This document shows positions 31,201 to 32,962 of a stretch of 64,000 nt of DNA, piece after piece. The stretch is from Podarcis filfolensis (lineage: Eukaryota): the NCBI GenBank assembly GCA_964270895.1, contig OZ185441.1; one strand, written 5' to 3'. Below the pieces are notes generated by a model. The model saw nothing but the letters and a program-made list of their open reading frames with translations, made no database searches and was not told the DNA's origin. The number at the start of each line of letters is the position of its first letter. Position 1 is the first letter of the stretch. A program made the translations under genes and the position numbers.

Positions 31201-32962
31201 AGCAACTGATTTAGAAATTGGGTTTTGTGCTAACATTTTGCTTGAAAACTATATTTATACCCTAACCCTATGCATGCCAAATTGGAAGCTGTAGTGTTCA
31301 AGGGAGTTTACCTATGAAAATCATATAAAGGGTTATGACTTTGCTTATTTATCAATGAGGGCAAACCACAGCATTTCCAGTTTTGATTAGATACAATCAG
31401 TCAGAACCTTTTAATATTTTGCAAACCTTAAAACGCATGCTAATAACTGTACATTCACCGTTACTACACAAACCTGCAGTGGTCTGTGTATTAGTATTTA
31501 ACAACCAGTCTGCAGTGCTGAGCAGAGTCATGTCACCTAAAGGAAAATTGCAAAGAAAATGAAAAAGCTAGTACCTTTTCCACACATGTCCCAAAAGAAT
31601 ACGTACAAAAATGTACAGAAGTTTTCCATTTCTTTTTAAAATTGTTAACTAATTAATTAAAGGGCAGTGCTTCAGGCTGTGTTCCTGCAGTCTACAATCT
31701 CTAAAATATAACCTTGATTCAACATCCAGACTAATTTTTGTACTCCTTTTTATTTTTCCTCATTTCCTCATGCACCCACTATCCCTTGCTCTGGGGGATA
31801 CCTTGCCTGATAAAGACTTCTGTGGAAATCACAATTTCACAAATTGGTTGGTCCTATTAAAGGAGTTCTTTTTCTCCTTACCAGTGCACCATTTTTCTCT
31901 TTACTTGGAACCATCACATTAAAACTTAACTTCGATGTAAGTGTGTTTATCAACAGGAAAAGTTTTCTGGATTTTGTTAAGATAAAACAGTATGCTTACA
32001 TTCCAATTTTAAAATCAGAAGTCAGTGGTGTATGCGCACACACAAAAAGATAAACAGCACAGTCCTCTGCATGTCTGGAATCAAGTCTCTGTGTTTAAAG
32101 ATCTTTATTCACAGGTAAGTATGCTATGACTACATCCTCAATCAGATGTCTTTATCCAAAAGGCAGTGGTCAGTCATTAATATTGACTAAGGTTGCAATC
32201 CTAAAGATACAAATTTGCATTATTTTAATTTAGAGAAAGGGGACAAAAATGGTCTATCTGACAAAATACATTGCAGCTCCATTAGATTTAGAGGGAATGG
32301 AGGCTAAAAGTATAATCTGATAACCCAAATAGTCTTCAGTTAGAACTCAGACCAAAAAAATGTTTTGGGTAAAGGGCATGGGAATGGTGGGTAAATGGAT
32401 AACTCATTTGATAGATGTTTCACATCACTGTCATTGCTATAGTCAAACTTCAGTAAGTGCCCATGAATAACCATTGGAATGTTATCTAGTTATACAGTAT
32501 TTCATATCTAATAGAAAAGTAAGGCCTGGTAATCTGAGGTGGTAAACTAGTGTGTAAAGGCTCTACCATTTCAGTTTCCAGATGGGAGCTCCTCCATCCA
32601 AAATAATAGTAAAATCCACCAGATAGAAAGCTAGCTGACAGGAAGCTGAAGGATACTTTCCCTGACATGCTGCTTTGTCTATGTGCAGAAGACTGTTTTG
32701 TATGAAGGAGTATTCTGTCATGAAAGCCCCCACCTTTAGTCCGAAGTGGCATAGTCCAGACACACATTTACCATCTCAGTGAAAACTGAGGTCTAAAGTA
32801 ATCCCATCATATCACAAAAACCCCCACCAACAACTCACCTTCTGTGCCATTGGGTGTCATGGAATTATTATTTATGTGAGAATTATCAAGTTTTGGACCA
32901 TTGGGAGATTCACTACTACCACTTAGTCGACTATGAGGGCTGGCTAGATCCTGCATTTCCAT
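1193..32962 (-). CDS. EYA1: EYA1 spliced CDS, 3'-partial (coding exons 3-11; 1047 nt, 349 aa in window)
   Basis: Nine minus-strand exons with GT-AG boundaries and matching phases join into [119 protein letters not shown]...[28 protein letters not shown]. Exon sizes 124/78/70/143/138/83/187/140/84 match human EYA1 as recalled (human exon 6 is 146 nt). Confidence 0.98.
1866..2005 (-). CDS. EYA1: EYA1 exon 10 (140 nt)
   Basis: ttctgaagcag|AG TAC AGT ... CTA GAG|gtatt; (E)[46 protein letters not shown]. Confidence 0.97.
3333..3519 (-). CDS. EYA1: EYA1 exon 9 (187 nt)
   Basis: ctctggcag|GAG TAT CCT ... ACA GCA G|gtaatt; [62 protein letters not shown] (inside track ORF 3271..3666). Confidence 0.98.
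3908..3990 (-). CDS. EYA1: EYA1 exon 8 (83 nt)
   Basis: ctgtttcag|GA AGC AGT TTC ... CAA CAG|gtaaat; (G)[27 protein letters not shown]. Confidence 0.97.
4580..4611. repeat. (GT)n microsatellite
   Basis: Direct observation. Confidence 0.98.
4770..4925 (+). mobile_element. Possible Penelope-like element 3' remnant
   Basis: gcactgatgaagtaaactctagtcca...aataaataggttaatg...aaacagacgaacacagctactccttggaa resembles reptile Penelope/Neptune termini as I recall them. Confidence 0.45.
5901..5941. repeat. (AC)n microsatellite
   Basis: Direct observation. Confidence 0.98.
7993..8417 (-). mobile_element. Interspersed retroelement fragment, RTE-type 5' region
   Basis: GC-elevated block in an AT-rich intron; gagttctccttctcctagatgggctacgttcccaggttggtgagccc resembles the reverse of RTE-clade 5' UTRs and a common lacertid repeat (recalled). 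Confidence 0.55.
10178..10315 (-). CDS. EYA1: EYA1 exon 7 (138 nt; alternative internal acceptor at 10300)
   Basis: gatttag|GT GCA TTG TGG GCA GGC ATC AAG ... ATG CAA G|gtctgt; (G)[45 protein letters not shown]. Confidence 0.97.
13125..13300 (-). mobile_element. L2-type LINE 3' tail with (TAG)n end
   Basis: (tag)n-tataccgtccttcatctgtagattccagggcggttcataacacaaaaatacaag: terminal stem then A-rich 3' UTR seen in reverse. Confidence 0.55.
14039..14181 (-). CDS. EYA1: EYA1 exon 6 (143 nt; CAGCAG tandem acceptor)
   Basis: aacgaacag|C AGA CCA TAC ... TCA TAT G|gtgagt; (N)[47 protein letters not shown]. Confidence 0.97.
14482..14551 (-). CDS. EYA1: EYA1 exon 5 (70 nt)
   Basis: ctccgtacag|CA ATT GGA AGC ... 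CCG TCC AA|gtaaga; (A)[22 protein letters not shown]. Confidence 0.97.
15118..15290 (-). mobile_element. Squam3-like SINE, diverged
   Basis: Reverse complement of the 185-370 family (gaagctgctttacacagagtcagaccactagtccatc...). Confidence 0.6.
16218..16295 (-). CDS. EYA1: EYA1 exon 4 (78 nt)
   Basis: attttag|TT AAA ACA GAG CCA ATG ... GGA TCA G|gtaagg; (V)[25 protein letters not shown]. Confidence 0.97.
16786..16941. mobile_element. Short MITE-like element with perfect 22-bp inverted arms
   Basis: acaggcggcgaccattttgcac (16786-16807) and gtgcaaaatggtcgccgcctgt (16920-16941) are exact reverse complements; the right end reads CCTG|TA as in Tc1/mariner-type ends. Confidence 0.65.
17700..19320 (-). 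mobile_element. Decayed L2 (CR1/L2 clade) LINE ORF2 fragment, about 1.6 kb
   Basis: Minus-strand peptides [13 protein letters not shown]...[24 protein letters not shown] (linker), [16 protein letters not shown]...FKVL and [14 protein letters not shown] (post-RT motifs typical of L2); many stops and frameshifts. Confidence 0.8.
19731..19866. mobile_element. Palindromic hAT-type MITE
   Basis: TIRs cagtgtttcccaaa / tttgggaaacactg and internal hairpin cagctgtttttggact...agtccaaaaacagctg; same core as 50298-50433; TSD not preserved. Confidence 0.75.
22800..22955 (-). mobile_element. Squam3-like SINE, diverged
   Basis: Reverse complement of the same family (ttccagccctatctggagatgcca ... ctgcatacaaag). 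Confidence 0.55.
23511..24687 (+). mobile_element. BovB (RTE clade) LINE, 5'-truncated, dead RT
   Basis: ORFs [20 protein letters not shown]...[14 protein letters not shown]...[17 protein letters not shown] and [22 protein letters not shown]; 3' end gtccacggggtcacgaagagtcggacatgactaaacgact(aac)n; YADD decayed to HADG; interrupted at 24227-24380. Confidence 0.95.
24227..24380 (+). mobile_element. 3' tail of a second retroelement (L2-like) plus (ATT/ATC)n, nested in BovB
   Basis: ggaagccgccagagtggctggggaaacccagccagatgggtggggtataaataataaa followed by a trinucleotide tail; BovB sequence resumes at tattcattctgaagg. Confidence 0.7.
24850..25200 (-). mobile_element. L2-type LINE 3' fragment
   Basis: A-rich UTR seen in reverse then gcttgcctaaacaaaaaggttttaagcagg...gggagttcc, typical of reversed L2 3' ends. 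Confidence 0.5.
29339..29458 (-). mobile_element. CR1 LINE 3' end
   Basis: catagaattatagaatcgcagagttggaagggaccacaaaggtcgtctagcgcaacccc is the reversed CR1 terminal (ATTCTATG)n and stem. Confidence 0.8.
31474..31536 (-). CDS. EYA1: EYA1 alternative in-frame cassette exon between exons 3 and 4 (63 nt, phase 1-1)
   Basis: ttttcctttag|GT GAC ATG ACT CTG CTC AGC ACT GCA GAC TGG TTG TTA AAT ACT AAT ACA CAG ACC ACT GCA G|gtttgt; (G)[20 protein letters not shown], similar to EYA4 [14 protein letters not shown] at the same position (recalled sequence). Confidence 0.88.

Follow-up and report, generated by a model that had tools for sequence, protein, structure and literature searches.

A probable ancient alternative exon of EYA1 in the lizard Podarcis filfolensis, encoding a conserved LxTADWLL core

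The window described here is a stretch of 64,000 nucleotides of genomic DNA from Podarcis filfolensis (contig OZ185441.1 of assembly GCA_964270895.1), which carries on its minus strand exons of EYA1, a key co-activator and phosphatase in the development of ear, kidney, placodes and muscle. Between the upstream coding exon with the main start codon (32839..32966) and a downstream exon of 78 nucleotides that begins the sequence VKTEP (16218..16295), a segment of 63 nucleotides at 31474..31536 had been proposed in a first-pass annotation as a hidden, in-frame cassette exon. With a probability of about 0.85, we consider this segment to represent in the lizard an alternatively used EYA1 cassette exon of ancient origin that is annotated already in other species. 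Here we present the features of the exon and its splice signals, together with its distribution among vertebrates, its alternative use and its possible function.

The translation of the upstream coding exon shows 100% identity to EYA1 proteins. This exon ends with ...NGTE and one base of a split codon, and the donor following its end at 32839 is GTGAGT. The VKTEP exon, preceded by TTTTAG at its start at 16295, opens with two bases of a Val codon and contains a lysine within a SUMO consensus. Because of the one-base split codon at 32839 and the two-base split codon at 16295 the cassette has phase 1 on either side, with Gly and Val as junction codons. Read on the minus strand from 31536 to 31474, the exon comprises 20 whole codons and two split junction codons; the frame, counted from 31534, contains no stop across the 63 nucleotides and stays open past them. 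The encoded peptide of 21 residues carries all positions of the pattern G-D...L-x-T-A-D-W-L-L...A that are invariant in the protein alignment described below, including the LxTADWLL core. VKTE, which corresponds to the motif psi-K-x-E, follows directly after the cassette, and the junction codon still reads Val.

The 3' splice site of the cassette (31537..31565, minus strand) consists of a pyrimidine tract, with 85% pyrimidines at -22..-3, and the AG at 31538-31537; a branch-point-like TTCAT is located at about -27. The 5' splice site GTTTGT (31468..31473, minus strand, GT at 31473-31472) is weak, since its bases at +3 and +4 depart from the consensus, and CAG/GTTTGT agrees with the consensus CAG/GTRAGT at 7 of 9 positions. 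The G+C content of the exon is 46%, compared with 35% in the surrounding kilobase. A scan for tandem repeats around the cassette found none nearby, and scans for bacterial-type promoters and terminators around it delivered nothing relevant. The good acceptor, the weaker donor, the phase of 1 on either side and the absence of a stop, as described in the first-pass annotation, were all seen on the minus strand. Its statement that the list of open reading frames misses the exon needs correction, since an ATG open reading frame of 44 amino acids (31397..31531) is listed in the same frame as the cassette.

A search of a representative library, for which the query was the upstream exon alone and not a spliced, joined model, yielded 43 matches. 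Among these, several gene models run from ...NGTE straight into a 13-residue stretch of the cassette peptide, namely those of the skink Lerista edwardsae (KAJ6663962.1), two songbirds, a characiform fish and cod. Mammal-type N-terminal fragments found in the same search pass from NGTE directly to VKTEP. Later word searches were queried with cassette-bearing database proteins, using region 25-80 of the Lerista protein (18 matches) and region 30-80 of the green turtle protein (282 matches, of which the best 120, all with at least 66 bits, were used). The cassette region matched annotated EYA1 proteins of more than 100 species with E-values of 1e-13 to 1e-21. A TADWLL-type motif is present in 131 of the 131 proteins taken from both word searches, and 126 of them (thus at least 126 overall) show a clean junction of NGTE, cassette and next exon. 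Judged from these sequence matches, the exon is already known and not new, being present in at least 126 annotated proteins in RefSeq, UniProt and GenBank. The term "hidden" is therefore not appropriate for an exon annotated so widely, the more so as Podarcis muralis (A0A670IDZ8) and the EYA1 isoforms X1, X2, X9 and X17 of Pogona vitticeps share the 21-residue peptide of the window with 100% identity.

The cassette has a length of 21 residues in sauropsids and of 22 residues in fishes and amphibians. Carriers among the fishes include three sharks, bichir, sturgeon, gar, many teleosts, coelacanth and lungfish; among the tetrapods they include five frogs, one turtle, more than 30 birds and nine squamates. 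The squamate carriers in RefSeq and UniProt are the lizards Podarcis muralis, P. raffonei (XP_053251856.1) and Pogona vitticeps (XP_078249950.1, isoform X2, and XP_078249956.1), as well as Vipera latastei, Naja naja, Pseudonaja textilis (XP_026561877.1), Notechis scutatus, Erythrolamprus reginae and Thamnophis elegans. The cassette also occurs in ab initio models of Lerista and Phrynosoma. Cassette-bearing proteins from other groups are, for example, those of Danio rerio (XP_009295600.2, isoform X5), Taeniopygia guttata (XP_041569865.1) and the shark Heterodontus francisci (XP_067888104.1).

No mammalian proteins occurred among the best 120 of the 282 matches, which bear the cassette and represent all other classes of jawed vertebrates. 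Together with the mammal-type fragments this hints that annotated mammalian EYA1 is without the cassette, either by loss or by non-annotation, absence as such being unproven. The canonical EYA1 of about 592 amino acids is without the cassette, as the first-pass annotation had noted. A query with the cassette-less EYA1 of Tetraodon (region 1-100) retrieved cassette-less isoforms only, because the insertion lowers the score, and is uninformative on absence.

Several of the retrieved gene models deviate around the cassette. In models of Lerista, Phrynosoma, two songbirds and three fishes the reading continues past the cassette donor into the intron, or short spurious pieces are placed between the cassette and VKTEP, apparently by mistakes of annotation near a weak donor. 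In the models of cod (Gadus) ...EQMSSS follows the cassette, so that the start of VKTEP including the lysine of the SUMO consensus is missing, and the models of Liparis and Collichthys leave out the entire VKTEP exon behind the cassette. The joins in these three genera may be real isoforms or model errors.

Alternative use of the exon follows from three species in which some annotated isoforms contain it and others do not. In Pogona vitticeps the cassette is present in X1, X2, X9 and X17 and missing in X5 and X8; in Heterodontus francisci it is present in X1-X3 and X10 and missing in X4 and X5; in Danio rerio it is present in X5-X8 and missing in X1-X4, X9 and X11. According to these annotations the cassette is alternative, and with matches from shark to bird the earlier proposal of an ancestral in-frame EYA1 exon kept as a cassette is well borne out. 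Two Logan contigs from fish runs (SRR24834160 and SRR5131154, 3.7 and 2.6 kb) contain an uninterrupted EYA1 open reading frame of 607 amino acids which includes the spliced cassette. In both contigs the junctions of the cassette coincide exactly with the AG and GT of the carp genome, and since the contigs are intronless with these exact joins, they represent assembled complementary DNA (cDNA). As a separate observation, 14 small runs of 56-148 million letters each, derived from several organisms, contain 6-18% of the sampled words of 31400-33000, which would fit target capture of a conserved element rather than RNA.

For comparison at the DNA level, 500 nucleotides around the exon were aligned between the window and Lerista, Phrynosoma, Chelonia, Melospiza and Cyprinus. 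AG, GT and the reading frame are intact in all six sequences; the exon measures 63 nucleotides in the five sauropsid sequences and 66 nucleotides in carp. The exon shares 61 of 63 positions with the window in both Lerista and Phrynosoma, 59 of 63 in the turtle, 51 of 63 in the bird and 51 of 66 in carp. For the intron at -100..-21 the identity to the window is only about 36% in turtle, bird and carp; of the last 20 intron bases, 15-20 are identical in the four other sauropsids and 10 in carp. The donor reads GTTTGT also in Lerista, Phrynosoma, Chelonia and Cyprinus, and GTTTGG in Melospiza. Changes within the core are synonymous, e.g. in Leu codons of the bird and in Thr and Ala codons of carp. 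When the proteins of 15 species, ranging from shark to lizard, are aligned, the positions G42, D43, L47, T49, A50, D51, W52, L53, L54 and A62 are invariant. The loss of frame or splice sites in relatives, which the first-pass annotation had considered as an argument for decay, was not seen; both are kept in two lizards, a turtle, a bird and carp.

In Phrynosoma platyrhinos the last base of the exon is A instead of G (CAA/GTTTGT), which gives a weaker donor with GT and frame kept. This A would turn the junction codon from Val to Ile, and the psi-K-x-E motif would still hold.

Downstream of the donor, within a conserved block, the intron contains GCATG, the RBFOX core motif, at 31436..31440 on the minus strand (+34 from the donor). 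In the five sauropsid sequences, the window included, GCATG is located at +29..+37 from the donor; as a background, the motif occurs 27 times in the 16,543 nucleotides of this intron. A position of (U)GCAUG within about 100 nucleotides downstream of the donor is the classic one for enhancement of exon inclusion by RBFOX proteins. Inclusion of the cassette would be regulated rather than constitutive, because the donor was kept weak over more than 400 million years and the flanking intron is conserved. An RBFOX-type enhancer at the sauropsid GCAUG, about 34 nucleotides past the donor, may promote inclusion; we propose this candidate motif only tentatively as the driver of cassette inclusion, and the odds are somewhat against it.

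The cassette belongs to the N-terminal, non-catalytic part of EYA1 and ends one residue ahead of the lysine of VKTE in the downstream exon, which is K43 in the numbering of cassette-less EYA1. According to the review PMC11155398, which cites Sun et al. 2015, modification of Eya1 by SUMO1 at K43 and K146 represses its transcriptional activity. AlphaFold2, applied to the first 140 residues with an alignment of 15 species, gave a mean predicted local distance difference test score (pLDDT) of 54.6 and no secondary structure, with all residues predicted as disordered. Inclusion of the exon would insert 21 residues into a disordered transactivation region and leave the frame and the VKTE motif unaltered. 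That a DWLL-containing peptide is inserted directly before the VKTE SUMO consensus, as previously described, is correct. The LxTADWLL peptide could act as a short acidic-hydrophobic docking motif that alters the binding of co-activators or partners to EYA1. As an invariant acidic-hydrophobic octamer is located in a disordered activation region, a docking motif is the simplest reading, and we give a change of co-activator or partner binding by this peptide an even chance. The cassette may also alter the access to the adjoining SUMO site. Function as a short linear motif, an effect on SUMOylation and a role of the internal AUG are speculative.

Other explanations of the segment have to be weighed. 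The same intron of 16.5 kb contains 655 open phase-1 AG..GT candidates of 30-200 nucleotides, so that a segment without coding role could be open by chance; however, only the cassette has both a pyrimidine content of 75% or more at -22..-3 and a donor matching 7 or more of 9 consensus positions, thresholds which were set with the values of this exon already known. The matches to annotated EYA1 exons and the splice sites and frame conserved in the DNA alignment rule out such a chance segment, for which the probability is negligible. A decaying pseudo-exon, in which splicing of the ancestral exon has ceased in this lizard and inertia alone conserves the sequence, would agree with the weak donor and with the lack of RNA support from this genome, but it is very unlikely: the reading frame, the splice-site AG and GT and the pyrimidine tract have all been kept, annotated isoforms of Podarcis and Pogona contain the identical peptide, the invariant core shows synonymous changes relative to other sauropsids, the flanking intron is conserved, and the weak donor is ancestral and common to species in which the exon occurs in cDNA. 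Cassette forms are listed as isoform X1 or X2 in many species, which would be expected if the exon were constitutive, not alternative, in this lizard. The annotation of Pogona vitticeps X5 and X8 without the exon and the combination of a conserved weak donor with a conserved flanking intron, which is typical of regulated exons, make constitutive use improbable, although less so than decay.

For a real exon the main effect might also lie elsewhere, in the context of the SUMO lysine or in a hydrophobic signal for export or localisation, by which activity or nucleo-cytoplasmic distribution would be tuned. This is suggested by the end of the cassette one residue before the lysine of VKTE, the SUMOylation of which at K43 is described as repressive in the above-mentioned review PMC11155398, and by the cluster of Leu, Met and Trp within a disordered region. 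Psi-K-x-E is unchanged, however, as the junction codon stays Val, and by our own inspection the spacing of the hydrophobic residues does not fit the common patterns of export signals. We regard this alternative as unlikely, if worth keeping in mind, and prefer an alternative cassette exon encoding a putative docking motif.

Several observations weigh against a regulated cassette that encodes a docking motif. The AlphaFold2 model shows neither a helix nor raised confidence at the motif, and a literature search for "TADWLL" found no paper with the motif string, nor any experiment or paper addressing the peptide. Carp is without GCATG at the corresponding position, its first copy being located at +228; GCAUG follows an A in place of U; and the block around GCAUG is conserved overall, so that retention of the motif is not independent evidence. 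A run-index search with the cassette stretch gave no matching indexed run recorded as RNA, the matches being likely source DNA runs and the small capture-like runs, and a search by exact protein for cDNA contigs of lizards or birds found none, which leaves the support in squamates at the level of annotation. In the literature on EYA1 splicing no description of this exon was found, and a table of alternative Eya1 exons from RNA sequencing of mouse kidney was not mappable to it. Taken together, it is conceivable, yet rather doubtful, that LxTADWLL is an uncharacterised, isoform-specific docking motif which dates from the ancestor of jawed vertebrates, belongs to the transactivation region of EYA1 and perhaps also to EYA4, is switched on by an RBFOX-type downstream enhancer in sauropsids and is apparently missing in annotated mammalian EYA1. 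If this were true, the apparent absence from annotated mammalian EYA1 would explain the lack of functional study.

Two further features of the window may be mentioned. A second donor, ACG/GTGAAT (GT at 31458-31457, minus strand), delimits an optional extension of the exon by 15 nucleotides (31459..31473) which stays in phase 1 and adds the five residues GLCSN. Isoforms X1 and X12 of Podarcis raffonei carry exactly this GLCSN extension ahead of VKTE, and GGTGAA of the second donor is retained in Lerista and Chelonia. Elsewhere in the window there are two runs of N, at 37290-37621 (332 bases) and 59030-59169 (140 bases).

Outside mammals the cassette belongs to the regular annotation of EYA1, and it is not to be counted as a discovery. 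Its interest rests in the core of eight residues, invariant from shark to lizard, which adjoins a SUMO site reported as repressive.

Among known systems, exon 7 of EYA3 offers a precedent within the family: it likewise keeps the frame, is used alternatively and lies in the N-terminal, non-catalytic region of an EYA protein. Its use depends on the tissue, and under the control of RBFOX2 it switches EYA3 between the partners SIX4 and ZBTB1 (PMC10665822). It differs from the cassette described here in being another exon of another paralogue, and RBFOX control in EYA1 is proposed from the conserved GCAUG. The closest counterparts are the annotated EYA1 cassette isoforms, in which the exon lies, as in the window, between NGTE and VKTE, in the same phase and with 21 amino acids in sauropsids. 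The window exon, here read from genomic DNA only, shows no sequence difference from those of the two lizards Podarcis muralis and Pogona vitticeps; the EYA1 cassettes of fishes and amphibians are one residue longer than that of the window, with 22 amino acids. In human EYA4 an N-terminal exon probably carries a TADWLL motif directly before VKTEP; the EYA4 segment is presumably longer (about 28 amino acids) and part of the canonical isoform. Homology of the two segments is plausible, and it would make the cassette older than the duplication that separated EYA1 and EYA4.

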